Assembly: GCF_006345805.1 (NCBI RefSeq)
Contig: NW_021832539.1
Coordinates: forward strand, 1 to 52,264
DNA from: Octopus sinensis
Lineage: Eukaryota
Length of the DNA: 52,264 nucleotides
Direction of reading: 5' to 3'
Shown here: piece by piece, positions 1 through 29,636 of the stretch
Layout of the letters: each line of letters opens with the position of its first letter
Position numbering within the stretch: position 1 is the first letter of the stretch
Program-made: the position numbers and the translations under genes
The notes under the pieces: model-generated
Database searches by the model: none
Seen by the model: the letters and a program-made list of their open reading frames with translations, nothing else
What the model was told of the DNA's origin: nothing

Positions 1-589
1 TGATAATAATTGCAACTGGAACAAATCATTCCATAAGATATAGCTGAAACAAATATTGAGCAGTCAAAGTCCTTGTTTGGTAACTTTGCTCTGTATCTGA
101 TTCCTTTCATGCATTGGCAGATCTGGTGATGAGATACTAGAGATATACAGGGATATACATTTCACATTAATTTACATAAAATCTAGATCCCTACACAGAT
201 AACATGAATAATTTAGTCATATTCCAATGAAAAGCACAAAGAGACATTCTCTAAACTATCGAGAAAATATTCCAAGACTGATGGTTACTAAAGCAACATT
301 AAAGCCTCACCATCCATGAAGACCTCTCGTAACAAACAGAAATGTATTTCTGCCATTATTGGTGCAGCTTTATAATACTCATTATGAAGTAGAATAACAC
401 AGTAAATAATAATCCCCGAATTTCTACGATGTGGTAGAGGCCTACAATACAGGAGTTATGAAAAGTATTATACACTAGCATACCTATGTCCTCAAAAATG
501 CAGTCAACTTTATTAATGTTACAAAATGGCACATGAGTGCAGGGGGAGAAAACATATAAGTGTATATATATATATATAAAGAGGTATGT

Positions 590-756
590 TATAAGGTATT
601 TCTCCAAACATTTACTGTTTTCCTCATAATTTTTGAAAACCTGATTAAATTCGATGATTAATATATAAATTCTGTTATGATTCTTATTAGATAAGAATTT
701 AGAGATATATTCCATTGGTTTATTCCAAATAGATAACCCTTAAACATGTAGGTTTC
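590..756 (-). pseudogene. Degraded exon D of the tandem gene family (further copy starting at 4831)
   Basis: ctccag acceptor at 757-759. EYISKFLSNKNHNRIYIL resembles EIIRKFKKNLNKDEINEL in exon 21273-21463. Frameshift/stop lies near its 5' end. Confidence 0.4.
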
Positions 757-915
757 CTGGAGTTTTAATATAAATTAATAATTAAAATAATAATGACAAT
801 AATAAATCAAAAATAAAAGAAGAGTGCCATTGTTATCAAGTGAACGATAGTTTGACATCTCGTGTGTCTTCAACCGGTTCAAAAATTAATTTTGTCAATC
901 TACTTCATTTTGGCG

Positions 916-1082
916 AATATATAAAGGATTGAGGTACCTCCTCCAGATATAGAAACAAAATAAAAGAAGAGTGTCATTGTCATCAAATCACAAGATGTCA
1001 AAATATCCTTCACATGATGACAATAGCACTCTTTTGTTTTTGCTTCTATATCTAAAGGAGTTACCTAAATTCTTTATATATT
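916..1082. repeat. Fold-back/MITE-like inverted repeat with ~70-bp arms (second copy about 4993-5158)
   Basis: 916-985 is the imperfect reverse complement of 1015-1082; followed by an (AAT/ATT)n tract. Confidence 0.7.
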
Positions 1083-1259
1083 AATAATAATAATATTAAT
1101 ACGAATAATAATAATAATAATAATTATTATTATTATTATTGTAAAGGAGTATGAAGTAGCATTTCATGAATTTTAATTTTCATTTTGATTTAAATGCAAC
1201 TGAATATTGACCTACACAAGTTTCCATTACATTGATTAGTAACCATTGTAATTGTAACT

Positions 1260-1319
1260 TTACTGTAATACTGGTACAGTTTCTTGAAGGTCTTCATTGT
1301 GATATCCTTTCCGATCGAA
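1260..1319 (-). CDS. Putative terminal exon C, copy 1 (FDRKGYHNEDLQETVPVLQ*)
   Basis: ctttcaccag acceptor; phase 0 fits exon B; TAA at 1260-1262. Confidence 0.45.
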   Translation of the reverse strand, partial: FDRKGYHNEDLQETVPVLQ

Positions 1320-1680
1320 CTGGTGAAAGTTTCATGTTAATTTTAGTATTACATTAAATAAAGTGGTGTTAAACGTTAATTCAGATGTGAACTTTATTTT
1401 GAATTCCAAGAATTGATTGGATAATTTCTCGTTTGTTTCTTGGAGTCAGTTATTTCAAAATATATCATTCGATTGATTATATTATGATTGATTATTTAGC
1501 ACTTATTTATATTGTGTAAAATTAATTTCCCTTCTTATGTAAACATCTTAATTTTTGTTCGTGTCTAAAATTTATTACATTATACTTTTTGATAAAATTC
1601 TTCTATGCACAGGTCTTATTTATTTGTCCCTGGTCTATAAGCAGTACTAATTATTTCTCTAGATTGCTAGGCCTTTACAG

Positions 1681-1827
1681 TTCCAGGCTTGACAAGCTAC
1701 CACTAAAATGGCAAAAGTGTATTGACAATATAGATGCATAGCTTGATGAATAAAACAATTCCTTGTATTTATAAAACATGAGCAAACTTTTTTCGTTTCT
1801 ACAAATTTCATACTTTATGACCTAATA
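1681..1827 (+). mobile_element. Tc1/mariner 3' end remnant
   Basis: Encodes KLPLKWQKCID...DE*, like a mariner transposase C-terminus, followed by a TIR-like end. Confidence 0.6.
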
Positions 1828-1992
1828 GAAGCATTTTGTACCAATGTGAGGAAATATATGAAAATATTCACAAAGAGGATATGCAAAGTTCATTTTACAC
1901 AATCCAGTGATGAAATTATCAACAATTCATTTATCACAATTTATGAAACCAACAAAAATAAATCAAAATTTAAAAGTTAAAAAAAGACTTAC

Positions 1993-2029
1993 TCTTTTTA
2001 GTTTCTTGAATATTTTATCAAGTAAGTCA
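1993..2029 (-). CDS. Micro-exon B, copy 1 (S-DLLDKIFKKLKR)
   Basis: ttttgcag acceptor, gtaagt donor, 37 nt, phase 2 to 0, open frame. Confidence 0.7.
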
Positions 2030-2499
2030 CTGCAAAATATGTAAATGTGAAAATTCCAGATTAGTAAAATGAATCTGTCATTATGAGGCTAGAGTCTAAT
2101 ATTTCAGTCTTTATCTTTTAACTGAAAGAAAGAATGAAATGGAATCAAGAAAAGGAAGTGAAACTAAAATTTAAGGAAATGTATGGCAGCTGAAAAGTTA
2201 TAACCAGTGAGAGTGATTGGATCAGAGAAGGAAGGTGAGAGGTGAACAAGGAGTAAAGGAAAGTAAGAAATTAAGGCAGTAGTTTGAAAAAAGCAATTTC
2301 TCAAAGAAAGATAAGTAGGAATATACTGAAAATTGTAAGAGTGGGAGAAAAGATGGAGAAACTATTTGTGACAGAGGTAAGTAACAAATAAGAGGAACCA
2401 TACTTTAAAAATAGATTTATTCACACACACACACACACACACCTTAAAATTAGATTTATTTACACACACACACACACAAACACACACACATACACACAT

Positions 2500-2960
2500 G
2501 GGAAGGTAATAGTGATGGAGTTGGTGATGTGGGCATACTCCTAACCGAGAAATGGGTGGGTAAGATCATAGAAGTAGTTAGTGTATGTGATAGAGTACTT
2601 ATGCTCAGGCTAGTCTTGCAGAATAGTATAGCTACAATTATATCTGTCTGCACCCAACAAGTGGGCCAACCAAATGAACAGAATGACCACTTTTATTTTT
2701 GATCTCCAACACCAACTTCAGGAAGCCAGCAAGCCACCTGATAACCTATTACTTAGGTGACTCTGTTAGGCAGATAGATTTCATTCTCACCAGACTGCAT
2801 GATGCATGACTGCTCTTAAATGCAAAGACCCACCCTGGTGAAAAATGTAGCCCCAGCATAGACTAGTCATTAGTGACTTTAGACTCCAGGCCAGAAAGAT
2901 GCTAAGAAGCAGCCAGTCTGGAAAAGAAGGATCTGGCAGCTTGAGAACCCTTTGTTTGGT
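2500..2960 (+). mobile_element. RTE-type LINE APE-endonuclease fragment, internally deleted
   Basis: Same sequence as 6599-7240 but lacking about 280 bp (junction ttttat|ttttgatctcc near 2695). Confidence 0.85.
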
Positions 2961-3450
2961 CAGAGTTAAACTTCACTTTCTTTAGTGCATAGGTCAGCAA
3001 AAAATTTGAATTTTGTTGATCAGTATTATAAATGAAATAGCTGCCTTAAGAGATATGAACCTAGAGAAATGATGGATTATTATATTAAATGCCAAACAAA
3101 TTTTCTTTAATGCCTTCTGTTGATTTCCATCCTTCTACTATTCATCAATAATACCAATAGTCTAATTGAGTAAGATTTGGAAGTATAGCAATTTAGTATA
3201 CATATCCATCATATTATGAGATAATAATTTACAAGGAAATCAACAATGTCCCTTGCTCATTGCTTTAAAATTATCAACATTTCCAGGAGAGGTTTTTGTT
3301 TGCTAATAACTGAATTAATCTCAACTGATCAGATATCTCTAATTGCTGGGATAATCTCAGCTGATCCCCTATACACCATAATTGGAACCCTGCTATATAT
3401 ATATATGTACTTATATATTAACAGATTTAGGCATATGTTTCTTGCATTAC

Positions 3451-3482
3451 CTCTCTTCATCTGAGCTGTCCATTTCATCTTC
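3451..3482 (-). CDS. Micro-exon A, copy 1 (EDEMDSSDEE-S)
   Basis: ttcttttaatttcag acceptor, gtaatg donor, 32 nt, phase 0 to 2, joins exon B in frame. Confidence 0.7.
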
Positions 3483-3958
3483 CTGAAATTAAAAGAAATG
3501 ATATTGAACGTTAGAAGGAATGACAGAATTCCAACTTGTTACAACAGATTATACACAGAAGACCTTACTGAATATAAATAGTACAACAGGTGAGAGTAGT
3601 GACAATTTTCTGATGGAGATTATGCAATCCATATTATCACAGATACACATGATTTCTTTTTTTCTTATTTATAGTTTTAGCATGGTACACTGGTTTTGAC
3701 ATAGGATTTGAATGGAAGAAATCTTTTAACTAAAAACAGTGTCAAATGATGATATGAGAATTATTATTTAATCAATTTAAACATTGTGTAAAATTCAAAG
3801 TCATATGAGACTTAGAAATGTATACAATACCCCACAACTAGCTTTAAAAATGACTAAAAAGAAGAGACGAAAGAGTGTAAATAGAGAACAATTAAAAGGT
3901 CATGTTACTGAATAGTCATTTAATTTTCATGTATTGGACGATCTTTTATTTGACGTAC

Positions 3959-4440
3959 CTTGAAAGAAAATTGCACCTACAGCCCTGATTAACATTTTAA
4001 AATCAAAATTCCAAACAACCTCTCTCTCAGATTGATAATAATTGCAACTGGAACAAATCATTCCATAAGGCATCTGAATAATTCCCAGATGAACACAATC
4101 ATGATTCTATATAATATATTCCTGGCAGAATATAGCTGAAACAAATATTGAGCAGTCAAAGTCCTTGTTTGGTAACTTTGCTATGTATCTGATTCCTTTC
4201 ATGCATTGGCAGATCTGGATGAGATACTAGAGATATATAGAGATATACATTTCACCTTAATTTACATAAAATCTAGATCCCTACACAGATAAGATGAATA
4301 ATTTAGTCATATTATAATGAAAAGCACAAAGAGACATTCTCTAAACCTATCAAGAAAATATTCCTAGACTGATGGTTACTAAAGCAACATTAAAGCTTCA
4401 CCATCCATGAAGACCTCTCGTAACAAACAGAAATGTATTT
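3959..4440 (-). pseudogene. Degraded long exon F, deleted copy
   Basis: Ends at AAG|gtacgt donor; protein-like frames with several stops; lacks about 270 bp relative to 8223-8965. Confidence 0.35.
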
Positions 4441-5154
4441 CTGCCATTATTGGTGCAGCTTTATAATGCTCATTATGAAGCAGAATAACACAGAAAATAA
4501 TAATCCCCGAATTTCTACGATGTGGTACAGGAGTTATGAAAAGTATTATACACTAGCTTACCTATGTCCTCAAAAATGCAGGCAACTTTATTAATGACAC
4601 AAAATGGCACATGAGTGCAGGGGGAGAAAACATATAAGTGTATATATATATAAAGAGGTATGTTATAAGGTATTTCTCCAAACGTTTACATGTTTTCCTC
4701 ATAATTTTTGAAAACCTGATTAAATTCGATAATTAGTATATAAATTCTGTTATGATTCTTATTAGATAAGAATTTAGAGATATATTCCATTGGTTTATTC
4801 CAAATAGATAACCCTTAAGCATATAGGTTTCCTGGAGATTTAATATAAATTAATAATTAAAATAATAATGATAATAATAAGAGCAAAAATAAAAGAAGAG
4901 TGCCATTGTTATCAAGTGAACGATAGTTTGACATCTCTTGTGTCTTCAACAGGTTCAAAAATAAATTTTGTCAATCTACTTCATTTTGGTGAATATATAA
5001 AGGATTGAGGTACCTCCTCCAGATATAGAAAAAAATAGAAGAAGAATGTCATTGTCATCAAGTCACAAGATGTCAAAATATCCTTCACATGATGACAATA
5101 GCACTCTTTTGTTTCTGCTTCTATATCTAAAGGAGTTACCTCAATCCTTTATAT

Positions 5155-5201
<47 letters not shown>

Positions 5202-5203
5202 TA

Positions 5204-5245
<42 letters not shown>

Positions 5246-5361
5246 AAGGAGTATGAAGTAGCATTTCATGAATTTTAATTTTCATTTTGATTTAAATGCA
5301 ACTGAATATTGACCTACACAAGTTTCCATTACATTGGTTAGTAACCATTGTAATTGTAACT

Positions 5362-5421
5362 TTACTGTAATACTGGTACAGTTTCTTGAAGGTCTTCATT
5401 GTGATATCCTTTCTGATCGAA
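5362..5421 (-). CDS. Putative terminal exon C, copy 2 (FDQKGYHNEDLQETVPVLQ*)
   Basis: Acceptor at 5422-5424; TAA at 5362-5364. Confidence 0.45.
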   Translation of the reverse strand, partial: FDQKGYHNEDLQETVPVLQ

Positions 5422-5780
5422 CTGGTGAAAGTTTTATGTTAATTTTAGTATTACATTAAATAAAGTGGTGTTAAACGTTAATTCAGATGTGAACTTTATT
5501 TTGAATTCCAAGAATTGATTGGATAATTCCTCATTTGTTTCTTGGAGTCAGTTATTTCAAAATATATCGTTCGATTGATTATATTATGATTGATTATTTA
5601 GCACTTATTTATATTGTGTAAAATTAATTTCCCTTCTTATGTAAACATCTTAATTTTTGTCCGTGTCTAAAATTTATTACATTATACTTCTTGATAAAAT
5701 TCTTCTATGCACAGGTCTTATTTATTTGTCCCTGGTCTATAAGCAGTACTAATTAATTTCTAGATTGCTAGGCCTTTACA

Positions 5781-5927
5781 GTTCCAGGCTTGACAAGCTA
5801 CCACTAAAATGGCAAAAGTGTATTGACAATATAGGTGCATACCTTGATGAATAAAACAATTCCTTGTATTTATAAAACATGAGCAAACTTTTTTCGTTTC
5901 TACAAATTTCATACTTTATGACCTAAT
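5781..5927 (+). mobile_element. Tc1/mariner 3' end remnant (duplicated copy)
   Basis: Encodes KLPLKWQKCIDNIGAYLDE*. Confidence 0.6.
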
Positions 5928-6093
5928 AGAAGCATTTTGTACCAATGTGAGGAAATATATGAAAATATTCACAAAGAGGATATGCAAAGTTCATTTTACA
6001 CAATCCAGTGATAAAATTATCAACAATTCATTTATCACAATTTATGAAACCAACAAAAGTAAATCAAAATTTAAAAGTTAAAAAAAGACTTAC

Positions 6094-6133
6094 TCTTTTC
6101 AGTTGCTCGAAATATTCATCAACTTCTAAGTCA
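6094..6133 (-). CDS. Micro-exon B, copy 2 (S-DLEVDEYFEQLKR)
   Basis: ttttgcag acceptor, gtaagt donor, 40 nt, phase 2 to 0. Confidence 0.7.
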
Positions 6134-6598
6134 CTGCAAAATATGTAAATGTGAAAATTCCAGATTAGTAAAGTGAATCTGGCATTATGAGGCTAGAGTC
6201 TAATATTTCAGTCTTTATCTTTTAACTGAAAGAAAGAATGAAATGGAATTAAGAAAATGGAAGTGAAACTAAAATTTAAGGAATTGCATGGCAGCTGAAA
6301 AGTTATAGCCAGTGAGAGTGATTGGATCAGAGAAGGAAGGTGAGAGGTGAACAAGGAGTAAAGGAAAGTAAGAAATTAAGGCAGTAGTTTGAAAAAAGCA
6401 ATTTCTCAAAGAAAGATAAGTAGGAATATACTGAAAATTGTAAGAGTGGGAGAAAAGATGGAGAAACTATTTGTGACAGAGGCAAGTAACAAATAAGAGG
6501 AACCATACTTTAAAAATAGATTTATTCACACACACACACACACACACCTTAAAATTAGATTTACTTACACACACACACAAACACACACATACACACAT

Positions 6599-7240
6599 GG
6601 GAAGGTAATAGTGATGGAGTTGGTGGTGTGGGCATACTCCTAACTGAGAAATGGTTAGATAAGATCACAGAAGTAGTTAGAGTATGTGATAGAGTACTTA
6701 TGCTCAGGCTAGTCTTGCAGAATAGTATAGCTACAATTATATCTGTCTGCACCCAACAAGTGGGCCTACCAAATGAACAGAAGGACCACTTTTATGATAT
6801 TCTTCTGCAGGCTACCTCCAAGATGAGTGACAATGATCTCATATTCATGACTGGGGATTTCAATGGGCATGTTGGACGGCAGCCCAGCATCTACCATCGT
6901 GTTCATGGGGGCCATGGAATTGGTCCCTGAAGCGAAGAGGGAGCAAGGCGACTGGAGTTCTGTGATGCAAATAACTTTTTGATCTCCAACACCAACTTCA
7001 GGAAGCCAGCCAGCCACCTGATAACCTATTACTTAGGTGACTCTGTTAGGCAGATAGATTTCATTCTCACCAGACTGCGTGATGCATGACTGCTCTTAAA
7101 TGCAAAGACCCACCCTGGTGAAAAATGTAGCCCCAGCATAGTCTAGTCATTAGTGACTTTAGACTCCAGGCCAGAAAGATGCTAAGAAGCAGCCAGTCTG
7201 GAAAAGATGGATCTGGCAACTTGAGGACCCTTTGTTTGGT
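6599..7240 (+). mobile_element. RTE-type LINE APE-endonuclease fragment
   Basis: GVGILL, GDFNGHVG, NTNFRK and QIDFILTR endonuclease motifs; contains stops. Confidence 0.9.
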
Positions 7241-7714
7241 CCTTTCTTTAGTGCATAGGTCAGCAAAAAATTTGAATTTTGTTGATCAGTATTATTAATG
7301 AAATAGCTGCCTTAAGAGATATGAACCTAGAGAAATGATGGATTATTATATTAAATGCCAAACAAATATTCTTTAGTGCCTTCTGTTGATTTCCATCCTT
7401 CTGCTATTCATCAATAATACCAATATTCTAATTGAGTAAGATTTGGAAGTATAGCAATTTAGTATACATATCCATCATATCATGAGATAATAATTTCCAA
7501 GGAAATCAACAATCTCCCTTGCTCCTTGCTTTAAAATTATCAACATTTCCAGGAGAGGTTTTTGTTTGCTAATAACTGAATTAATCTCAACTGATCAGAT
7601 ATCTCTAATTACTGGGATAATCTCAGCTGATCCCCTATACACCATAATTGGAACCCTGCTATATATATATGTACTTATATATTAACAGATTTAGGCATAT
7701 GTTTCTTGCATTAC

Positions 7715-7746
7715 CTCTCTTCACCTGAGCCGTCCATTTCATCTTC
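7715..7746 (-). CDS. Micro-exon A, copy 2 (EDEMDGSGEE-S)
   Basis: Same splice sites as copy 1; two substitutions, both non-synonymous. Confidence 0.7.
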
Positions 7747-8222
7747 CTGAAATTAAAAGAAATGATATTGAACGTTAGAAGGAATGACAGAATTCCAACT
7801 TGTTACAACAGATTATACACAGAAGACCTTACTGAATATAAATAGTACAACAGGTGAGAGTAGTGACCATTATCTGATGGAGATTATGCAATCCATATTA
7901 TCACAGATACACATGATTTCTTTTTTTCTTATTTATAGTTTTAGCATGGTACACTGGTTTTGACATAGGATTTGAATGGAAGAAATCTTTTAACTAAAAA
8001 CAGTGTCAAATGATGATATGAGAATTATTATTTAATCAATTTAAACATTGTGTAAAATTCAAAGTCATATGAGACTTAGAAATGTATACAATACCCCACA
8101 ACTAGCTTTAAAAATGACTAAAAAGAAGAGACGAAAGAGTGTAAATAGAGAACAATTAAAAGGTCATGTTACTGAATAGTCATTTAATTTTCATGTATTG
8201 GACGATCTTTTATTTGACGTAC

Positions 8223-8866
8223 CTTGAAAGAAAATTGCACCTACAGCCCTGATTAACATTTTAAAATCAAAATTCCAAACAACCTCTCTCTCAGATTGAT
8301 AATAATTGCAACTGGAACAAATCATTCCATAAGGCATCTGAATAATTCCCAGAACACAATCATGATTCCATACAACATATTCCTGACAGAATATAGCTGA
8401 AACAAATATTGAGCAGTCAAAGCCCTTGTTTGGTAACTTTGCTCTGTATCTGATTCCTTTCATACATTGGCAGATCTGGATGAGATACTAGAGATATATA
8501 GAGATATACATTTCACCTTAATTTACATAAAATTTAGATCCCTACACAGATAACATGAATAATTTAGTCATATTCCAATGAAAAGCACAAAGAGACATTC
8601 TCTAAACCTATCAAGAAAATATTCCAAGACTGATGGTTACTAAAGCGACTTGGCCTTAACATACCCGAAGACTTCTTGTAACAAACAAAAATATATCTTG
8701 CATAGAAAAAAAATATTACTGAATAAACTGGTCTTCTTCTTCTTCATAACCAAACAGTATTTCATCCCCATCAACTCTACAGATCCTCTATAAAGCTCAG
8801 ATGAAACCATCAAATATGTAGTTCTCATATACTTGAGATGGTACTGTTGCTACACAAAGTGACATC
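8223..8866 (-). pseudogene. Degraded long exon F
   Basis: ttttcacatgttccag acceptor and gtacgt donor; in-frame stops; weak similarity (YExY...EIxFG) to ORF 19934-20270. Confidence 0.35.
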
Positions 8867-13605: not shown

Positions 13606-13648
13606 CATTTGTCTTGCCATGAAAGAATTGTCATCATGATCTAAGTCA
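13606..13648 (-). CDS. Micro-exon B, diverged paralog (S-DLDHDDNSFMARQM)
   Basis: ttatccag acceptor, gtaagt donor, 43 nt, phase 2 to 0; flanks (about 13440-13980) align to 1830-2420. Confidence 0.65.
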
Positions 13649-14235
13649 CTGGATAATCTGTAAATGTGAAAATTGCAGATTAGTAAAGCAAATTTATCAT
13701 GATGAGCCTAAAGTTTAATATTTCAGTCTGTCTTTTAACTGAAAGTAAGGAATAGAAGAAAAATTGTGTTTTTGCATAAAATGGACTCAAGAAAATGGGA
13801 AAGGAAGTAAAATTAAAGGAATTGTGTGGCAGGTGAAAAGTTATACCCAGAGAGAATGATTGGGTCAGAGAAGAGTGACAGGTGTAATAATGGCAGAAAG
13901 ATGGAGAAACTATTTGTAACAGAGACAAGTAACAAATGAGAGGAATCATACCTTAAAAAATAGATCTATTCACAGATAAATATATATTTACAACACTTCC
14001 AATATAACATCAGTCACAATATAGCAACAGTCCCAAAACAACATTAGTTATTAAATAGATATATCAAACCATATCCATATATATTTAGTGTTTCTGTGAA
14101 ATTATGTCCGATGAGAGATCAGACTTTTAGGATAAGAATCAGACTGACCAGCTTCATTGTTACCTTGCAATTCACCAAGATCCACAGAATCTATATGGCT
14201 ATTATTACTTATATTTATTTTTTCATAACACATAG

Positions 14236-17405: not shown

Positions 17406-17437
17406 CTCTGTGTTGCAAAGACTTCCAAATGGAGATC
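17406..17437 (-). CDS. Micro-exon A, diverged paralog (DLHLEVFATQ-S)
   Basis: ttcttttatttccag acceptor, gtaatg donor, 32 nt; flanks (about 17280-17840) align to 3290-3900. Confidence 0.65.
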
Positions 17438-18030: not shown

Positions 18031-18075
18031 ATTGGTTTGTGTGTGTGTGTGTGTGTGTGTGTGTATACAGACACG

Positions 18076-18116
<41 letters not shown>

Positions 18117-18189
18117 ACACACCACACACACACACACAGATATTTACTAATGGTTCACAACATAAATAATAATATATATATTATCTTAC

Positions 18190-18284
18190 TTGATAGAGAA
18201 TCCCGTCTGAAAGTAGGTTATTCAGGTGTCTATAAATTTTTGTCCACTTCAACAAAAACGGCAAATATTTCAATTTATTCTTTG
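18190..18284 (-). CDS. Putative exon (A-KNKLKYLPFLLKWTKIYRHLNNLLSDGILYQ)
   Basis: gttacag acceptor, gtaaga donor, 95 nt, phase 1 to 0; fits exon A. Confidence 0.45.
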
Positions 18285-18419
18285 CTGTAACATAGATTTC
18301 CCAAAAAATAATTCATTTTATATTAAAATGTCCTTTAACTAAATCAAAATATTTAATATCATCAATATGGCTAATATGACATCTTATAATATTCCTTCAG
18401 ACCAAGGCGACAATCTATC

Positions 18420-18560
18420 TTTATGTTCTGAGTTCAAATTCCACCTAGGTCGACTTTGCCTTTCGGAGTCGATGAATTTAGGTACCAGTTGTGTACTGGG
18501 GTCGATCTAATCAACTGGCCCCCTCCCCAAAATGTCGGACCTTACACCTATAGCCAATTT
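18420..18560 (+). mobile_element. 5'-truncated SINE (Meta-domain-like)
   Basis: CTGAGTTCAAATTCC...GGTACCAGTTG...CCCCCTCCCC. Confidence 0.75.
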
Positions 18561-18664
18561 TTTTTATTGTTCATATTATTTCACAAAACAGTGAGCTGGC
18601 AGAATTGTTAGTGTGCTAGGTGAAACCCTTAGTATTTCTGCCAGATAGTGTTCTGAGTTTATAT

Positions 18665-19410
18665 AAAGTGTCAAAAGTTGTAAAATGGGTTTTTGCATGA
18701 GCTCTCTGCAGACAATTGCAAATGACATGTTGATTGTTGTGCATCATTTTGATGCACAAATACCTTTTTTGGATAGAGACTTAACTGAGATGAGAAATAG
18801 ATAATTTGCCATAATGTTTAGTGAAAACATCAGTAGCTCATATTTGGTGAAGATCCAACTCAGCAGTCCAGAAGTGGTTGGCATCTAAGGAAGATTCTTC
18901 TGAAATTATGGTAGGATATGCATGGAATAATTCATTCCAAGCTGCTACAGGATAACCAAACAATAACAACCAATCTATACTGCCAAAAGCTAGCATGTTT
19001 GAAAGCAGCCATGCATCAAAAACACCCATCATTAATAAACAAAAATGAAATCATCCTTCATCATAATAATCCTAACACTGCAAAAATGGCCAAAGAAGTT
19101 TGAGAAAAATAGACCTGGGAAATTATGCATCACTCACTTTATTCTTCTGATCTCGCACCAACAGATTATCATCTCTTTAAAAGTTTACAAAATCATTTCA
19201 GTGGATTAAGACTTAATTGAAAAGTAGAAGCTGTAATTTCCTTTTTCCCTTCTAAAACTAAGGATTTTATGAACGTGGCATTAAAAAACAGATGGAAAGT
19301 GGTCACAGATGAGAGTAGTAACTATATTATTGATTAAATAAATACGATAGTTTTTATAAATTCTTTTACTGAAACTTAAAAAACAGACAGAACTTTGTTA
19401 CAACCTGATA
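18665..19410 (+). mobile_element. Degraded mariner transposon (transposase C-terminal half and 3' TIR)
   Basis: WxxHEL, IILHHNN and YSSDLAPTDYHLF motifs; ends ...GTTACAACCTGATA. Confidence 0.85.
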
Positions 19411-19933
19411 TTATCTACTTATGTATAATATTGAATATACATACACAGTTTATAGTCATGATGCTGCTGTTTTTAGCTGAGAGAAAATCTCCATAGATAT
19501 GCTTTATTTAAAACACATATAGGAAAGAGACCAAAATTCCTCCTGGCAGTAACTCAAGAGAATGCCAGATGCATACAGTCTTGTGGTGGCTTGTCAATTA
19601 TGTGTACTTGCTGTGCTGCATACTGAGACAAAATCTGTCCTCTCCAACATATAGGAAACAGTAAAAAACACATTCACTGATATTTCAAATAACTACTGGG
19701 TTAAATATATATTCACTGCATGAAATTAAAATAACTATTTATGCAGCATAATAAATGTATGTACACAATTCACAGGCAGGAGTTAAGTCTTCTTATGACT
19801 GAGTGTAATAATAAATGTGTGAAATTAATGGTTATCAAAGAAAAAGTCAAAGTAATTAGCAATCAATAAGAATATCTAAATTATAGTTTATTATTATTTG
19901 GAGAGGAGAAGAGAAAAAAGAGCAAGGTGTAAA

Positions 19934-20270
19934 TCACTTATGGATAGTGCCACCCAGATTGGGATGGAAGATGATGTTGTGTTCAGATTCCCAAACATTA
20001 ATAATGGTCACTTTGTGGGACATATAAAAGTAAAATAATGAATAACAGTAATTAAAAGACTGCAGGTTAATCTTCAATATTAAATAAGGAAGGGTAACTG
20101 ATGCTAGTTTAACTCCAAATATTTCATTTGGGTTATTATTAATGCTGCTGAGTTTTTTTCTTATTTCAGGTAAAAAGTAATTATCATGTTCTTGAAGAAC
20201 ATAATATTCATAATATTCATTGCCAAATATCAAAAATATTTCATAACAATCTATATAAGTGTCATACTGA
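19934..20270 (-). CDS. Exon-like open frame of the unknown gene family (QYDTYIDCYEIF...GGTIHK*)
   Basis: ttgttcag acceptor; about 110 open codons in very AT-rich DNA; no recognisable domain. Confidence 0.4.
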
Positions 20271-20439
20271 CTGAACAATGACAATAAAACTTGTTTATAA
20301 TATAGATAATGTAAGATAGGATTACTGTTTTAATGTTCGGAATATAAATAAAGGCAATTGATAAAAGTCATCACTATACTAAAGGGAAAATAAAATTTAT
20401 TTAATAGATTGCCTCTAATAAACACTTGTTGACATGGTT

Positions 20440-20855
20440 AATCCCAGTACTGCCTGACTGGCTTCCATGCCAGTGGCATGTAAAAAGCACCATTAGAGTG
20501 TGATTGATGCCAGTGTTGTAGGACTGGCTCCAGTGTTGGAGATACGTAAAAAGCATCATACAAGTGTGGTTGATGCCAGTGCTATCTGACTGGCTACCAT
20601 GCCAGTGGCACGTGAAAAGCACCATTCGAAAATGGTTGATGCCAATGCTGCTTGACTGGCCCCTGTGCCGGTGACATGTAAAAAACACCCACTACACTCT
20701 CAGAGCTGTTGGTGTTAAGGGCATCAAGCTGTAGAAACCTTACCAGATCAGATTGGAGCCTGGTGCAGCCTCCTGGCCCACCAGTCCTCTGTCAAACTGT
20801 TCAACCCATGCCAGCATGGAAAGCAGATGTTAAACAATGATGATGAGGATGATGC
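20440..20855 (+). repeat. Interspersed repeat with about four tandem ~63-bp units and a GAT tail; inverse relative at about 42515-42830
   Basis: TGACTGG..CCATGCCAGTGGCA.GTAAAAAGCACC repeated. Confidence 0.75.
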
Positions 20856-21272
20856 AAAATAGTTTTATTGAATAATATTACACATTATGAGAACCAATTT
20901 GAGGTAGAAAAGTGCAATATTTTTATGAAATCAGTAAGTTTGATGTTAAAGAGCAGTAATGTTTATCTTTCTATAAGCTTCTGTTGTCCGTGCTCTAGAC
21001 CCCTTCTTATCTTTAGTTTATATATCATGTTCTAGACGAGAACAATTTTCAAGTAATTATTTCTATGGATAAGATCAAATTTGGTACCTCAAATCTGGGA
21101 AATATTCATCGGTTCAGCAATTATACAAGCATACTGTTTTTAATATCTATTTACAGTAATGTAGAGAAGGGGAATTTTTAAGTTAAATGTCTTTACCACA
21201 GACAAAGTACAATGCTAATGACAACATGTAAAACACTGACATTCCAGAAACTTTTTAGATATTTTTTATTAC

Positions 21273-21463
21273 CTTTGAACACAGCCTTCTTGATTACCAC
21301 ATCAAAGTCTTCACCTGAGTGTATATTGTAAACAGATAACAAGTGTAGTTGTTCCAGGGACTTAATCACACATTTAAACAGCTCATTTATCTCATCTTTA
21401 TTCAAATTCTTTTTAAATTTACGGATAATTTCCTTTCTGATCTCATCTCTCAGTAGCGTTATT
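21273..21463 (-). CDS. Putative exon (R-ITLLRDEIRKEIIRKF...KKAVFK)
   Basis: ctttctag acceptor; donor gtaata at 21272 (alternative gtaaag at 21196); open frame. Confidence 0.55.
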
Positions 21464-21568
21464 CTAGAAAGACAAATTATTTCAACTTTTTATAGTGATG
21501 AAAGAAAGTTGCATATAAAGAATAATATAAGATCTACACTGATGTCACAAACAAGATAGACTTCTTAC

Positions 21569-21715
21569 CTTGGTGCCCTAATGATAAATAATGTCATCCA
21601 GGCTACACTAATAGTAAAATAGATAACAAATGATGTTTGCTGAGGGACCTCACCCTTGATGGAACAGAGCTTAATTAAAGGAGGAAGGGTACCATCCATA
21701 ATCTTTACAGGACAT
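21569..21715 (-). CDS. Putative exon (CPVKIMDGTLPPLIKL...FIIRAP-R)
   Basis: Pyrimidine-rich acceptor ctcag, donor gtaaga, 147 nt, phase 2 to 2; in frame with the next exon across a 105-nt intron. Confidence 0.6.
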
Positions 21716-21829
21716 CTGAGATTGGTGAAGAAAAGACATGAATAAACTACAATTCAGAGATTATTGCTAATGAATTCTTGGATCTTGTAAATAGATAACC
21801 TAGAAGTCATAGTGTGGGTAGGCCTGACA

Positions 21830-22834
21830 AGAAATGGGGAGTTCAGCAGATGTGAGAGTGAGAATGGCTGGAGTAAGATAGAGACAAATGGATGTGGTTC
21901 TAATGAAGGAGTCTAGTAGAGGGGAGGAGAGCCTGGCTTAATCAAGATAATGAGAAAAGGAAGTGGTTCTATGTATGGAGTTTAGCAGAGCAGAGAGAGA
22001 AAGTATATAGAGAGGAAAAATATAGAGGAAGAATATAGAGAGGAGAAACAAGTGGTTCTAAGACAAGAGTCTGACAAAGAAGAGAGGAATATAGAAAGAA
22101 ATATAAGTGGTTATGAATTTGAAGTCTAGCAGAGGGAAGCGAGAGTATGGCTGGAGAAATATAATGAAGAAAATAAGTTGTTTTAAAGATAGAGTCTAGC
22201 AGAAGGGAGACAGAGTATGCCTGGAGAGAGTTAATGAGGAAAGAAAATAGTTCTACGGATGGAGTTTAGCTAAGGAGTGAGAGAGTGTGGGTAGAAGAAA
22301 ATAATGAGGAAAGGAAGTGGTTCTAAGCATAGAATCTAGTAGAGGGAAAATTGAGCATAGCTGGAGAAAGATAATGAGAAAAAGAAGTTATGAGAATGGA
22401 GTCTAGCAGAGAGGTGAGGGAGGATGACTGGAGGAAGACAGAGTGAAATGGAATTAGTGCTGAGAATGGAATCCAGGAGAGGTGAGAGGCAGCATGTCTG
22501 GAGGATATTAACGAGAAAAGGAAGTTGTTCTGAGGATGGGATTTAGCAGAGGAGCAAGAGAATGTTGCTGGATGAAGATAGAGACCAATGGGAATGGTTC
22601 TGAGGATGGAGTCTAGAAGTGGGACGATATAGCATGGATGGAGGAAGATAATGAAGAAAGAATGTGGTTCTAAGATGGAGTCTAGCAGCAGAAACAGGGA
22701 GTGTCACTGGAGGAAAATGGAGAAAAAATAAAAGTGGTTCTAAGGAAAGAGTCTAACTGTGGTGAGGTGGACAGAGCATGGATGGAGGAAGGGAATGAAG
22801 AATGGAAGAGGTTCTAAAGACGGAGTTTAACAGA

Positions 22835-22891
<57 letters not shown>

Positions 22892-23203
22892 ATAGCTAGA
22901 AGAACAGAATGTGTAACGAATGTGGTTCTAAGTATGAGTCTAGCAGAGGAAAGAGGATCATGGCTGGAGGAAAATAATTAGGAATGGAAGTACTTCTTGG
23001 AGGTGGAGAAGAGTGAAAGTAATGAAAGTTAAAGAAAGAAGTGGTTATAAATGAGGAAGGAAATGTGAAATTTGTGGAAGTTAGTGGAATAAAATAAGGA
23101 AAGGAAAACGTTCTAAGGATGGATTCTAGCAGAGAGGAGTTAAGGAATGATTGAAGTAAGATAATGAGACATAGAAATGGTTCTATTTGTGTTGAGTAGG
23201 GAG

Positions 23204-23239
<36 letters not shown>

Positions 23240-23340
23240 ATGGCTGGAGGAAGATAATGAGGAAAGGAAGTGTTTCTGGGAAGTACTGGAATGGAGAAAT
23301 GACGAAAGTTGAGGTACATAATAATTGCCTATTACAGTAG
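21830..23340 (+). repeat. Purine-rich minisatellite, ~70-bp unit, about 20 diverged copies
   Basis: TGGTTCT anchor recurs at about 22524, 22594, 22664 and 22735; unit approximates GAAAAGGAAGTGGTTCTAAGGATGGAGTCTAGCAGAGG... Confidence 0.9.
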
Positions 23341-23608
23341 AGGAATAATATCAGGGATAAACAAGTGATGAGCGTAGGACATGAAATGTGAAGCAAAAGT
23401 TTCCTGAGGCAGTGGGAATTGTGGTGAGGTAGAGCGTTTCACGAACAAGCATGTGCCAGAGGAGTAGGTTATTAGTTCTGCTGTGGTGGGCAGGCTTTCT
23501 CAAGCACAGCAAGGTGCTAAATATCTTGGTCCTTTGACATCTCCAAGGATCAGCAACTTGAGACTGGCCCCCAAAGCATCACCCCTTGTCTTTCTGAGTC
23601 TCCTTCTT

Positions 23609-26600
23609 TGTTATGACGTGCATGTACACGTTGGTTGTAAAATAACATTACCCAAATAAATATTTGGAATGTGGTTGTGTAGAATAACCTATCGCAGAAT
23701 TATGTTCACAGGGAATGCGCTCCAAATTACTCGAATGTAGGAACGATACAGTCGACCAACACTGTCAACTGCCTTGACAGTTCTCACAGTTCTTACTCAT
23801 TGAAATCCATTAGTCCACTTTCAGTCACGTGGGAGGGGGTGTTCACGATTCTGCCATATCTTCCTTTTTTAAGAATTAAACTCATGCGGAGTTTAATATC
23901 TTTTACGTTTAGGGTCTAATTACAGTGGTTCGGTTCTTTTCCTTTTTCTGGCACTTGGACATGTGGTTTCAATCTATTTAAGTGTTGGTACCTCAAACAT
24001 ATCATAAAGTACTTCCTTGGGAATTTCATCTCTCGTGGCCGTTTCTTCCGTAAATCGTTTTCTAAGCAGGTTTGTCTTTTATATTCAAAATTTTTACCTT
24101 TTACCAAAGATAACACTTTTCCAATCTCTTTAGTAATCACACTGCCCTGCCACATTTCTTTACCCTTTCTATATATTTTAAAGAAAACTATATCAGCTAT
24201 CTTGAGATATTTTGAATTATATTAATGTTTGCTATGTTACTCGGTAACAACTTGTCAAAGACGAATCTAAACTTTCTAAGGAACATTAATTCTGCAGGTA
24301 ACATTCCAGACGGGGTTTTTGGATTAGGTGTTACTCGGTACATTCATAGAAATTGTTGAAGTGTTAGGTCATCCGTTACTTGATTGTTCGCCTTATTAAA
24401 ACACTCTTAAAAGCATCGATAAAACGATTGTCCATTTGACATTAGTTGATACGTCAGTGTAGTCACAAGTTAGATAACGAACATTTTACAAGATTTTCTG
24501 AACTTGTCTGGAGTAAAATGAGTTCCATTATCAGATACATTTGTATCCAGAATACCATATCCGGTGAATGATTTGTGTAAAAAGTTTACTGTAAGCGGGG
24601 ATGTCGGATTTTTACATTTATGCATTTCAAGCCGCTCAGAAGAACTGTCTACCACAAAAACGTAATATGAACTTATTAAGTGGCCCTGCTTAATCAACAT
24701 GCATTCAAGAGAATGGGTTATCTGTTGCCATTTTGTGGTTGATGATTTTGCTGCTAGGGCACAACCTCTGCATGTTCTCACTAGTTCTTCAATGTCATGG
24801 CCCATCGTTGGCCAATACACATAAGTTCTGATGAATGATTTTATTCTCAAAAATCCCTGGGTGGCCAATGTGAAATTTCTTTAGTATTCCTTTCTGTAAT
24901 GTAGCTGGCGCTACTAATCCTTGTGTGTACATTAACACATTGTCACAAATTGAGAAAAGGTTCGAATTTGTGTTGCGTTCTGCAAGACACATATTTTTAT
25001 TTCATTTTTTCAGCCTTCACAATTCCTTTCATTTTCTAAATAAATTCATTGTTTTCCGATTTTAATTTTGTCTTGTAATGTAACTGATAATTCACATGTG
25101 ACATGACATAGAATATTTTTAAACTTCTTTTCTCGCTCCCAACGCAGCAATCACGGCGTCTTCAAACGGCTCAGTATTTTTTGGTATCAATATTGACAAT
25201 CGGTGTGTCCTAAATATTTAGATTGTATGAACTCCGCCTTAAAAATCACAATTTAGTAATATGATACCCCAGCATGGCAATCTGTTCACAGTATGGGTAG
25301 GTATTCCTTTCTATGACCCATATATAGATAATAACAGACGATGATATGTCTGTAGTCAAAAATTTATAAGGTCTAAAAATCTATGAAATATTTACACTGT
25401 AAACATAATCGCGAGAGCCTCTTTTTCGATTTGGCTGTAATTTATTTCTGCTGTAACAGTGAACGTGAGGCATGAGCCACAGTCTTCATGATGGTAACAT
25501 CTTCATATTTATGTAGTATTACTGCTCCGATACTGTACCCACTGACATCTAAAGGTACTGTAATCTCCACTGCAGGATCGAAATGTGTTAAAGACAAATC
25601 TGATGATAATATCTTTTAATTTCGACGAAAACCTTCTGACAATTTTCAGACCATTTCCACATCTTTTTTAGTAGATTATTTAGTAAAGCTGTTACCTTGT
25701 GCATATTTGGTATATAAATTTCATAATAGATTATCAGGTATATATAATAGGATTGTAAGGTAGACATACTTAATGGAGTGAAGTATATTTTAAATCGCAT
25801 CTGCCTTCGGTGGATCTGGTCAACCACAATTTTTATCAATGTGTTGTCCTAAATATTTAATATTCGCATTTCTCCTCGCTCAGTTTGAAAACATAATCTC
25901 TTACTTTTTCAAAAACACATTTTACATGCGTGACATGCTGATCTTGGGATTCACTTTTAATTAATATATTATCCACATAGGCCATTATGAAGTCACGCTC
26001 TGCTAGCATCACAGCCATCACTCGATGGCTAGAGCAACTTTTATGCCAAACAGAAGCCGAGTAAATTTCTACAGACATTTATGGGTATTAATTGTTAGTA
26101 GCTTAGAACATTCATCTTCCACTTGAATTTGCATCAGAAAGATCTAATTTCGAGAAAAATTTACCACAATTCAGTTTCGAGAAGATTTCCTCTGGGATAG
26201 GTAATGGGCACTAATACTGTCTTAAATATTCTCTTACTCCTGTCGAGAAAATTGCACAAGCACGTATTTTATTGTACTTTTTTCTAACGTATATACTATT
26301 GAACTCGCCCAGCCTGAGTAATCAATCTTTCCAATTACTCTAATTTTTTACAGTCTGTCTAATTCTTTATTTATCTGTTCCATTGTTGCAAATGGTAAAT
26401 TACTTGTGTGTTTGAAAACCAATAATGAATTTTCTTTTACCTAAAAGTTGGCTTTGAATTTATTGCACTGATCTTACTTGTCCAAAAAACCATCAGGGGG
26501 CTACTTTATTCACTTCTTTTCAAAAACTTTCTACCTCTGTATTTGAACTAGCGTATGACTCCATTACATTTTTACAAATCTTGTTTATGTACAAATCCCA

Positions 26601-28089
26601 TAAGTCAAACAGTTCCATCCAGTCAATCCCAGAAAAGTTGCTTGTATTTTTTTATACATAAGATTTCGCCTTTAAAATCTTACTGCTAATTTTGTCTTTA
26701 GAAATTAATTTAATTCCTGAGATACCACGTGCAATCATCGAGGATTTTTGTAGCATAGATTTCCCGATTCTTTTCCATGTGTTTTCAATAATTAAAGTAA
26801 TGTCATTACCTGTATCTAGTTGTTATTTTACATTTCTTATTAATTTTTACATCCATAAATTTCCTTTGCATCCCGTTTGTATTTCATGTCGCCGTAAAAG
26901 TGGTGACATTATTTTTCTATTGAACTCTTTTCTTGTTTATTTTTTGGTGGAGGGGAGTCCAGTGTGATTTTGTATGACCTATCATACCATACTTGAAGCA
27001 TTTTAGATTTTTATATGGATTAGTTTTCTGCTTTTCATTACTGTATATAAGAGCAGTTAATCACTTCAATTTGTTTCCTATCATGTCTTAAGTTTATTAT
27101 TCTCCAGCATTCCCCAGCTATTCCTTGTAGTGTTAGCTTCTGATTCTGCTCAAATTTAGTCAGCATTCAGTTACAAATTTCTGCATTTGCCATTAAACCG
27201 TGCATGAAAATTAAGAATTTTGGTAATTCATTGATTTTAAATCTCTCGCATTCCCTTATAACAATTTCAGCATATGTAATAAAATCATCGTCCTCTTTTT
27301 TGTATTATTTATGCAGTACCAGCGCATATCAAATAAAGAATTTTTCATTGAAAATTTTGGATACAGTATCCACAGTTTCTTCAAAACAAACTTCACCCAG
27401 TCTCTTTGATAATATGTAATAGCAATATTTCTCATCTTGGCTAGCCCTAACTTTCTCAATGAGAGTCGAGATTTTTCATCTTGTCAGTCGAAGCCATCTT
27501 CACTAAGAATTTCTTTATACCTTCAAACGTAAGCAGGAAAGTTACTGCCCTCATTTAGGTCACATGCGAGTTCTCCTATGGAGTTTGCGACCATGTCAGG
27601 AGTGAATGAACTGAATGTATTTTCTATTTTATTCTGTATTAGCTGTACTAAGATTTGCTATTGCTTCTGAAACCCCAACAACCGTTGATGCTGCTGCTGC
27701 TGCTTCTACAATTGCTAGTTTTGTTGCTGTTTTTGTATCAACAACAACTGTCATTGTTCATGTTGCTCTGTTTGAATTAGAGCAGCTGGTGAACTTCCCG
27801 CGTTCTAGCAACAATCTGCCCAGCATGAGCTTCGAAATAATCTCGTCGCCAAAAATGTTATGACATGCGTTTACACGTCGGGGTGTAAAAAAGTATTACC
27901 CAAATAAATATCTAACATGTGGTTATCTAAAATAACCTATTGCAGGATTATTATGTTTACAGGGAACCCGTGCCACTTGAACGTGGGTACGATATTAATC
28001 CTTGACACATCGCCCTAACATAGTAATCAATACGGTCAACCAACACTGTCAACTTTCAGTCAAGTGGGAGTGTTCAGGATTCTTCCACA
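23609..28089 (-). mobile_element. Degraded Ty3/Gypsy LTR retrotransposon (Mag-like)
   Basis: LTRs 23609-23858 and 27856-28089; PBS TGGCGACGAG at 27842-27851; PPT at 23859-23870; RT (AYVDNIL), RNase H and integrase (HIGHPG..YVYWP..CRGC) relics. Confidence 0.9.
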
Positions 28090-29318
28090 ACAATCTTCTA
28101 CAAGTTCCTTCTTTATGCAATTGTCCTCACCAATATGCATCACATGACTGAACCACGACAGTCTTCTATTTTGCACACAACATTTGATTAGTAACAGGTA
28201 AAACCTCTGAAATTTTTCCCACAATTTAATTTCGAGAAGATTTCCTCTGAGCTAACTAGGTCACCTGCTAATTAGGTCACCTAAGTGAAAAAAAAAATTT
28301 ACTCTTACTTCAGCACAATGACAAAATTATTATTCGATCAAAATAAAGAACAAACCGAATAGATAAGTCTGTATGCTCTTCCTTTACAAATCCAAATAAT
28401 TTTCGGTAAACACTTGCCATAACGTCTGCTGCTCCACCAGATCCCTGATAATAAAAGAAGAAATTTAAAGAATTCATTAAAATTAGATCTTCAAATAAGA
28501 AGTTATCTAAGAATGAACAAATATTTTGAAAATTCCTTTAAAACACACACATACTATCCAATAACGTTGTCTCTCTGTAAATAAAGGCATTATATAAAAC
28601 GAATTTAATGTGAGCTTAGCTGTAACACATTTCAGGGATGATTTATAGTGACATTATCAGAACCAAATTTCAATGACAATAGTAAAATAGATAGAGTCAA
28701 CTGTTTTTTCTGGTCTGAGACTGAACTAAATTGTTCTGGTACTAATTCCTTAGAGCCGAGTTGTGACAATATAAAATAAAGTTATGTACATAGAAACACA
28801 TGTCTCAACAGTGGATTTGAACTCAACACATGAATGTTAACCACTTTACCATCTCCTCCTTCTCTCTCTCACTCTTTCTTTCTTTCTTTCTCTTTCTCTC
28901 TCTCTCCATTCATTCATTTCAATGAAAGAGAAAATAATTCTCAAGTTAACATCAAACATCAATCCAAAGAAGCTGTTGTTAACTCCTCCTGCGTTGCTCT
29001 TACTTCCATTGCAATCTATAAAGTATCATGAATCTGTGGTTTGTGGTTTACTTGTTCTTAATTTTGTTGTGTATAAGAGACTGGGAACAGGAGGTGCACA
29101 GGGTGCAAGTGCACCTACTAACAATTTTGGTGTGTGCAAAATAAAAATTTGAGCCCTGTATATATGTTTCCGAGGATGAGGGAGCAGTGTTTAAAAATTG
29201 ATCTGTAAAAATTTGTTTTCAAAGCAAGAACCATGAACTAAAATGAAAATAAAACCAACAACATTCCTAGAAACACATATTACTGAACTAAACCATTTTT
29301 AACATCATTATTAGTAGA

Positions 29319-29367
<49 letters not shown>

Positions 29368-29446
29368 AGCGCGCGTGTGTGTATGTGCATAAAAGCGTTG
29401 TAGTTCGCTCGAAACATTGTAATATCAAAGAATGTAAAAAGAGAGA

Positions 29447-29625: not shown

Positions 29626-29636
29626 TTTATTTTTTC

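Follow-up and report, generated by a model that had tools for sequence, protein, structure and literature searches.

An unplaced contig of the Octopus sinensis assembly GCA_006345805.1 (VCDQ01003105.1; 52,264 bp) was analyzed over its entire length, referred to here as the window. The contig consists of AT-rich animal DNA packed with short interspersed elements, microsatellites, and remnants of long interspersed elements (LINEs) and retroelements, and its sole annotated product is the 180 aa protein XP_029655472.2 (P0003), encoded by LOC115229221. We found that this TRPM2-like gene carries a tandem array of duplicated micro-exons and that its coding exons have diverged far faster than the introns that separate them. 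The translated chain of eight minus-strand exons, named W, X, Y, A3, B3, A2, B2 and A1, reproduces the RefSeq protein exactly, which shows that the A and B micro-exons belong to the annotated coding sequence and are joined one after another in the mRNA. Comparisons were made with a second O. sinensis contig (L001, VCDQ01003212.1, encoding P0001), with a near-identical chromosomal relative (P0002, XP_036366207.1), and with the locus of O. vulgaris (L002, OX597830.1).

The first exon of the chain, W (28356-28444, 89 nt), reads GSGGAADVMASVY..., contains the ATG (28420) at which the RefSeq model starts, and is hypervariable in its last 15 nt. Exon X (21273-21463, 191 nt) is hypervariable along its 5' 125 nt and conserved along its 3' 66 nt, and exon Y (18190-18284, 95 nt) is hypervariable with respect to both L001 and O. 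vulgaris. These are followed by A3 (17406-17437, 32 nt, DLHLEVFATQ), B3 (13606-13657, 52 nt as annotated, RLSSDLDHDDNSFMARQM), A2 (7715-7746, 32 nt, EDEMDGSGEE), B2 (6094-6133, 40 nt, annotated as coding) and A1 (3451-3482, 32 nt, EDEMDSSDEE). A further copy, B1 (1993-2029, 37 nt), encodes SDLLDKIFKKLKR with a split Ser codon, the basic derived variant; its splice sites are intact and it may be expressed, but it lies outside XP_029655472.2. Instead, the RefSeq model joins A1 to an acceptor (cag/TTAA) located 92 nt upstream of B1, where a short terminal piece (2118-2121, minus strand) adds Ser and a stop codon. A strong acceptor, ctttcag/TTAA, is present 92 nt upstream of each of the B exons, at 2118-2122, ~6226 and ~13740 in the tandem units u1, u2 and u3 described below; used after an A exon it gives Ser plus a stop, and it could serve each module as a built-in premature-termination (poison) acceptor.

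An AG acceptor and a donor reading GTAAGT or GTAATG (GTAAGT in the three B paralogs) are preserved in each of the three A and three B copies, and one common frame runs through all six, the only one open in every copy. In this frame B1 is translated as DLLDKIFKKLKR and B2 as DLEVDEYFEQLKR, and the translations given in the initial annotation of this DNA, described there as basic and acidic, are correct. The module consists of A (32 nt) plus B (37, 40 or 52 nt), with acidic A exons and B exons beginning with SDL. The B paralogs had been described as 37, 40 and 43 nt long, with the frame always preserved. A length of 43 nt (13606-13648) is indeed obtained for B3 with the acceptor homologous to those of u1 and u2, but the RefSeq acceptor lies 9 nt further upstream, giving 52 nt and adding RLS; B3 is in frame with either length, although it is only the A+B pair (69, 72 or 84 nt) that preserves the frame.

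As XP_029655472.2 carries A3-B3-A2-B2-A1 serially, and the O. vulgaris and O. bimaculoides proteins do likewise, inclusion of the modules is not mutually exclusive, in the manner of Dscam, in these annotated models; mutually exclusive splicing, once inferred from homology to TRPM helices, is contradicted by this annotation. A candidate exon C (484-507), where non-synonymous changes had been claimed as for exon A, was discarded, as its acceptor is lost in u3, it holds a phase 0 stop, and it is absent from the annotated mRNA, in which B2 is spliced directly to A1, so that a unit contains two micro-exons instead of three; for exon A the claim stands, with two replacements. A signal-peptide first exon within each unit (ATG at ~3990 or ~3590) was also rejected, as the frames do not fit exon A. 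A search of the concatenated A+B peptides against 5.8 billion proteins gave no match, a misleading result given that the RefSeq protein of the locus itself surfaced only by exhaustive HMMER searching. None of ten open reading frames (ORFs) of the window was present in the protein collection by exact look-up, and an Rfam scan of the entire window returned nothing.

Self-comparison of the window revealed three tandem units: u1 (1-4033), at the low-coordinate end of the contig, which lies inside the array; u2 (4034-8294), orthologous to a unit of O. vulgaris named uX (L002 ~42255-46350); and u3 (8295 to ~17980), which is older and inflated by transposon insertions. An nhmmer search for additional units found only these three in the window and none in L001. 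When u1 and u2 were globally aligned, 98 of the 4007 aligned nt were substituted (2.4%), and 15 indel events were counted. A 480-nt tract (3609-4087, equivalent to 7873-8351) is identical in u1 and u2, and O. vulgaris has nine private changes where this tract shows zero difference, a pattern that indicates recent gene conversion between the two units. A 181-nt indel (6795-6975 in u2, position 2695 in u1) falls inside a LINE endonuclease-like fragment, the segment being missing from u1; in u2 the fragment corresponds to an ORF at 6628-6930 containing LIFMTGDFNGHVGR.

Between u1 and u2, 8 of the 37 aligned nt of exon B are substituted and a 3-nt indel is present, whereas the flanking intron differs at only 1 of 72 and 2 of 71 sites, in agreement with the counts first reported. 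The excess in the exon is significant against the 2.2% rate of non-exon sequence (binomial P = 1.3e-6), and in a permutation scan allowing any 37-nt window 41 out of 20000 shuffles equaled the exon B cluster (P ~0.002). Exon A shows 2 differences between the same units, both replacements. Compared with u1 and u2, u3 is 47-50% identical in the A exon and ~80% in its flanks, and ~60% identical in the B exon and ~81% in its flanks (Fisher tests; P from 2e-4 to 7e-3). The excess divergence of the A and B micro-exons is therefore real and beyond chance, and the initial claim that these are genuine coding micro-exons with a non-random excess of changes is upheld by the RefSeq chain and by these tests. 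On the other hand, the statement that only one substitution is synonymous is true as a count but involves only ~11 synonymous sites, and Nei-Gojobori proportions of differing nonsynonymous (pN) and synonymous (pS) sites for A+B are 0.147 and 0.134. The informative contrast is that between exon and intron, rather than that between nonsynonymous and synonymous rates (dN and dS) inside exon B. A-to-I editing that became "hard-wired" in the genome was rejected as a source of the differences, as the A/G share is 29% in exons and 31% in introns, with no enrichment.

To assign the changes to lineages, the O. vulgaris locus was used as reference; it is collinear with the window and contains u3, the single A/B unit uX, and then A' and B'. 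In non-coding DNA the three units are related as a perfect star: u1, u2 and uX have each acquired 41 changes of their own (1.1%). In exon B, private changes amount to 6 in u1, 2 in u2 and 0 in O. vulgaris, implying that the B2 type is near the ancestral state and that B1 is derived. B1 thus bears 6 of the 8 substitutions together with the loss of one Glu codon, converting EYFEQ into KIFKK, a codon loss that is common to the chromosomal O. sinensis copy P0002 (which reads DLLDEYFEQLKR), whereas B2 differs at 2 nt from its O. vulgaris orthologue (DLELDEYFEQLKR). In exon A the 2 private changes belong to u2, and both are A-to-G replacements (S to G and D to G). Within O. vulgaris itself, A' (KHGIGSSDEQ, L002 47308-47339) and A (EDEMDSSDEE, L002 43211-43242) are separated by six replacements in 32 nt, while no difference is seen over 170 nt upstream and ~70 nt downstream. 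Four states are found at codon 6 of the A exon (3465-3467 and 7729-7731) among near-identical copies. At the DNA level u2 has GGC (Gly), and both u1 and O. vulgaris have AGC (Ser); from protein sequences the residue is Cys in P0002 and Asn in O. bimaculoides, for which we infer the codons TGC and AAC.

The same reference bears on the possibility that the array is an artefact of assembly or polishing, or the product of two haplotypes misjoined in tandem. In favor of an artefact, the 52-kb contig is unplaced and begins at a unit boundary, and the window has one A/B module more than either the chromosomal copy (P0002) or O. vulgaris. However, every variant keeps the frame and the splice sites, the same pattern is seen in three independent sequences, and the distance between u1 and u2 equals that of each of them to O. 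vulgaris, too great for ordinary alleles. Moreover, the B2 peptide recurs as the B exon of the O. vulgaris protein P0006, and A1 is identical in nucleotide sequence to the O. vulgaris A exon (L002 43211-43242), both in an independent assembly. We consider an artefact extremely improbable.

We also considered that the changes clustered in B1 arose largely through one complex mutation, namely a template switch during replication that drifted to fixation in a redundant and possibly unused duplicate exon, for which selection would be unneeded. According to this explanation, 10 nt were copied in inverted orientation from the intron 137 nt downstream, changing the ancestral GAATATTTCG into AAAATATTCA. 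In fact, plus-strand positions 2007-2016 are the exact reverse complement of an intron 10-mer, AAAATATTCA (1861-1870, plus strand), which with its palindromic core (AATATT) is a possible donor and would explain 5 of the 6 u1-private substitutions; as this donor is also found in u2, in a u3-like form and in O. vulgaris, it is older than the change. The absence of B1 from the RefSeq model and the presence of small multi-nucleotide clusters in introns too are consistent with this proposal. Nevertheless, a match of 10 nt within a few hundred bases of 72% A+T sequence has an estimated chance of 0.02-0.15, the shuffle control rested on a weak null, and an extra C-to-A change, the codon loss, and two changes each in A2 and B2 are left unexplained. 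The proposal is also silent on why the sole large cluster in 4 kb sits within 69 nt of exon, and it leaves unaccounted for the equally exon-restricted changes of A3/B3, A' and W/X/Y, which affect all lineages. As a complete explanation we find the template switch doubtful, although the raw mutation behind B1 may have been a single event of this kind, later fixed.

The exon-restricted divergence extends to the rest of the gene. For W, X and Y, the window was compared over 18089-29904, where it is collinear with L001 and with O. vulgaris and where non-coding DNA diverges by 2.0-2.2%. Scanning without bias in 40-nt segments against L001 and against L002 placed the top peaks only in exon Y, microsatellites, the 5' 125 nt of X and the 3' end of W, with a few weak peaks of 5-6 hits in non-coding DNA. 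The 5' 125 nt of X diverge by ~28% from L001, and the whole exon differs from O. vulgaris at 40 of 191 positions; exon Y shows a 12-nt indel and a cluster of substitutions with respect to L001, and 18 differences in 95 nt with respect to O. vulgaris. The hypervariable patches of W (28356-28370) and X (21339-21463) are contiguous in the mRNA but split in the genome by a 6.9-kb intron that is ~98% conserved, and they end within 2 nt of both splice junctions.

Nei-Gojobori values for W/X/Y were 0.15-0.21 for pN and 0.05-0.09 for pS, compared to an intron divergence of 0.018-0.022, so that replacement divergence is 8 to 9.5-fold that of introns, and pN/pS ranges from 1.9 to 2.9 (P = 0.07, 0.013 and 0.02 against neutrality). 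This comparison of exons with introns and of dN with dS, which the initial annotation had proposed as a check, thus revealed across W/X/Y an excess of replacements over both introns and silent sites. Within the variable patches, 1 of the 33 four-fold sites whose first two codon bases agree was different, whereas ~29% of codon positions 1 and 2 differ. A three-way comparison assigned 21, 10 and 13 private changes in exon X to the three sequences, 6 to 8-fold the intron rate on every lineage, with three different states at 6 sites; invariant positions were mostly hydrophobic. A possible block replacement is the one 10-nt block of B1 that matches an inverted intron copy; the patches of X and Y look like scattered point changes on all lineages. 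The collinearity between the window and L001 stops exactly at (CA)n and (TA)n microsatellites (18040-18140 and 29911-30041), and downstream of exon Y L001 continues with more than 3 kb of other sequence and has no A or B modules within 10 kb. Minisatellites are present in the W-X and X-Y introns (20435-20689, a 66-nt unit repeated 3.9 times; 22123-22688, a purine-rich 70-nt unit repeated ~8 times).

The silent sites of these patches bear on two further explanations. The first is gene conversion confined to exons, by which patches would be pasted from diverged paralogous SLOG repeats or linkers through genomic DNA whose homology survives in exons alone or through spliced cDNA, the latter having been suggested in the initial annotation. 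Such a process is favored by several observations: the gene is located among numerous clustered paralogous SLOG repeats, u1 and u2 have undergone conversion as judged from their identical tract, the B exon of P0002 resembles a mosaic of B1 and B2, the W and X patches adjoin in the mRNA and end near the junctions, and the Nei-Gojobori pS exceeds the intron level. However, searches of the window, L001, L002 and 19 family proteins yielded no donor for B1, and identity to exon X is just 36-42% in the other SLOG repeats of P0002. In addition, the single difference at 33 four-fold sites indicates that the patches are not old, the changes are distributed over all three lineages with some sites in three states, and a cDNA donor spanning W and X would be expected to erase the 6.9-kb intron, which is still present. 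The suggestion of exon-limited conversion is therefore not sustained, and we regard it as unlikely.

The second explanation is that the exons are old and the introns young, that is, ancient copies or alleles whose introns were homogenized by conversion or recombination while selection shielded the exons. Besides the evidence of conversion between units, this would be compatible with the upstream 170 nt shared by A' and A of O. vulgaris next to exons that differ at 6 sites, and with two types of exon X that recur in different contigs and species (type I is represented by the window and P0002, and by the conserved patch core alone in P0005 of O. bimaculoides; type II by P0001 and P0004). However, the divergent islands end at the exon edges within a few nt and do not decay into the flanks, the silent sites within the patches are undiverged, and non-coding divergence is uniform and star-like over 3.7-10 kb, transposon remnants included. 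This possibility is accordingly very unlikely.

The identity of the gene was inferred from the region encoded by W, X and Y, which reads GSGGAADVMASVY...LLSVYNIHSGEDFDVVIKKAVFKAKNK... and corresponds to two parts of a TRPM SLOG domain, its glycine-rich loop (GSGGAADV) and its terminal helices. When a profile of the region was searched against the PDB, the top 26 matches were all TRPM channels aligned to the end of MHR1/2 (E-values of 1.8e-5 for TRPM7, 3e-3 for TRPM4, 7e-3 for TRPM5 and 0.03 for TRPM2), and a single-sequence search had already put TRPM5 and TRPM7 first. MHR1/2 is equivalent to the SLOG (LSDAT) domain (PMC13143021). The Pfam model LSDAT_euk did not match the 149-aa W-X-Y-A-B fragment or P0001, the window covering no more of the domain than its C-terminal end; a search of the contig revealed no upstream SLOG exons, and the N-terminus of the gene lies outside it. 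In contrast, P0002, encoded by a 248-kb gene, contains three LSDAT_euk domains (PF18139) and no channel part, the neighboring gene contains four, and an O. bimaculoides relative annotated as TRPM2-like (P0014), whose gene spans 404 kb, carries both LSDAT_euk and TRPM2 Pfam domains. Orthology of the other SLOG repeats between P0002 and the O. vulgaris proteins was too ambiguous and was not used.

A common order of modules (A3-type, B3-type, A, B, A', and then RSADDSWLEN) is found in P0002, in the O. vulgaris proteins CAI9735608.1 and CAI9735606.1, and in the TRPM2-like isoforms of O. bimaculoides. Between the A3-type and B3-type exons, two of the latter (P0012, isoform X3, and P0014, isoform X1) include a 13-aa cassette, SEKTESLDFNPIY, that is absent from isoform X2, which indicates that the linker micro-exons are alternatively spliced in O. 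bimaculoides. An AlphaFold model of a 192-aa fragment gave a weak hint that B exons are helical and A exons disordered, too weak for the mapping of residues. Judging from these homologies, LOC115229221 belongs to a cluster of octopus genes that are TRPM2-like and carry SLOG domains in tandem repeats, and the A/B micro-exons make up a tandemly repeated acidic linker placed after the last helices of the SLOG (MHR1/2) domain. A keyword look-up in a metazoan-wide and a cephalopod study of TRPM evolution, both recent, yielded no mention of such an architecture.

We propose, with a probability of about 0.6, that recurrent positive (diversifying) selection has acted on exposed residues throughout this gene after duplication. 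In this scenario, an old array of modules (u3, A/B and A'/B') would have existed first, and on the contig the A/B module would have been duplicated again to give u2 and u1 around the time of the split between O. sinensis and O. vulgaris. After this duplication both copies outpaced their own introns, with B1 changing most by the replacement of exposed acidic residues with lysine while hydrophobic positions (L..F..L) were retained. In all coding exons of the gene, amino-acid-changing substitutions have accumulated at ~8 times the level of intron substitutions, with silent sites staying at the intron level and the hydrophobic core kept. A replacement rate well above that of introns, silent sites at the intron level, a preserved core, and an effect on every lineage fit positive selection. 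By contrast, an exon-targeted mutator or conversion from old paralogs would raise silent divergence equally, and the clean silent sites argue against both; we thus favor selection over a special mutational process as the probable driver, and the radical variant in which a mutational process acts on exon sequence alone is much less likely.

Several observations weigh against this proposal. B1, the most altered exon, is outside the RefSeq model, which ends at the acceptor 92 nt upstream, so that selection on its peptide is unproven, and as the inverted intron copy covers 5 of its 6 private changes, the independent events may be 3 rather than 7. Exon B alone has a pN/pS of ~1.1 on ~11 silent sites, a tiny sample that cannot show an excess of dN over dS. 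In W/X/Y the Nei-Gojobori pS is 3 to 4-fold the intron value (P ~0.001-0.05), and given this increase a modest rise in mutation or some conversion may make a minor contribution. The window and L001 are both unplaced contigs of one assembly and could be alleles or paralogs, the window copy may be a gene fragment, and the structural model has low confidence (pLDDT 45). The diversifying selection put forward in the initial annotation is favored by the gene-wide evidence from W/X/Y, whereas in exon B, for which it was proposed, 6 of the 8 substitutions are private to B1.

Selection of this kind would be unexpected here, because TRPM channels are normally conserved. The larger finding is then the exon-restricted acceleration across a whole TRPM2-like SLOG gene, of which the micro-exon is one case: the locus unites tandem amplification of SLOG domains, a linker array of micro-exons that is still being duplicated, and, in comparisons among O. 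sinensis copies and O. vulgaris, replacement rates ~8 times those of introns. Should selection be confirmed, this would represent an unrecognized family of fast-evolving sensors in cephalopods, animals that to our knowledge lack adaptive immunity, with two helices by the nucleotide-binding loop and an acidic/basic linker as concrete targets. With a template-switch candidate and a pattern of point substitutions side by side in one gene, it would also offer a natural case in which selection and clustered mutation can be told apart.

SLOG domains sense NAD-derived nucleotides in TRPM2 and in the bacterial Thoeris protein ThsA. A more speculative extension, to which we give little credence at present, is that octopus TRPM2-like genes with 3-4 tandem SLOG domains constitute a fast-diversifying recognition family, immune-like or chemosensory, engaged in an arms race. 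Two surface helices past the nucleotide-binding glycine loop and the charge-switching linker would then be under arms-race selection, with ~8 times the neutral level of replacements, and an animal lineage would have turned an array of SLOG sensors into a variable receptor system.

Outside the exons of the gene, a ~4.2-kb insertion is located at a (TA)n microsatellite (~30050-34250), bounded by inverted terminal repeats of 478 nt (30154-30630 and 33731-34208) with 99.4% identity. It encodes a 722-aa Asn-rich ORF without Pfam match, and a related ORF of 463 aa is found at 36373-37764. As the insertion is absent from both L001 and L002, it would be a young or polymorphic element. Upstream of the gene, ~13 kb of retroelement-rich sequence (38151-51578) is present twice in L002 (2284-14305 and 79285-92826), in opposite orientations and with 95-98% identity. 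The last annotated exon of the O. vulgaris protein P0004 (KIDKCLGGYLVF) falls inside this repeat and is probably spurious.

A rate of exon divergence far above that of the adjoining introns is characteristic of genes for toxins, gamete recognition and immunity, and conotoxin genes are similar in this respect to other toxins with accelerated exons. Snake toxin genes are the reference for accelerated exon evolution and for its ASSET form (PMC2474615, PMC2711939), and the octopus locus resembles them in its young tandem duplicates with near-identical introns, in its exon divergence well above intron divergence, and in short exon segments that are radically changed, mostly by replacement of exposed residues. 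Unlike them, the octopus gene encodes a cytoplasmic TRPM-type SLOG domain plus linker, and no toxin or secreted peptide. In contrast to the block swaps of snake ASSET, silent sites and the spread of changes over lineages suggest many point substitutions, with B1 as a possible exception.

The micro-exon genes (MEGs) of schistosomes (PMC4350168, PMC10526429) are similar in having very short exons, kilobase introns, high dN/dS, disordered products and variation through an array of micro-exons. In MEGs, however, each micro-exon is symmetric (a multiple of 3), the products are secreted, and variation arises through exon skipping, whereas the octopus exons of 32 nt (A) and 37, 40 or 52 nt (B) are not individually symmetric, preserve the frame as pairs, and appear with all modules serially in the annotated mRNA, where they form a linker inside a large TRPM2-like gene. 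With TRPM channels (PMC13143021, PMC7306681), the gene shares through W/X/Y the GSGGAADV loop and the terminal SLOG helices. Canonical TRPMs, however, have one conserved SLOG domain without an acidic micro-exon array, whereas the octopus relatives, which we take to be cytoplasmic or membrane proteins, have 3-4 tandem SLOG domains and in some models (P0002) lack the channel part.

The exon-restricted diversity of the octopus gene, with dN above dS and near-identical introns among alleles and young paralogs, is also reminiscent of the major histocompatibility complex (MHC). The diversity of MHC exons is old, with diverged silent sites and lineages that cross species, whereas the silent sites of the octopus gene are at the intron level. 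The locus therefore behaves like toxin, MEG and MHC systems and yet belongs to none of them, being a TRPM-type SLOG gene.

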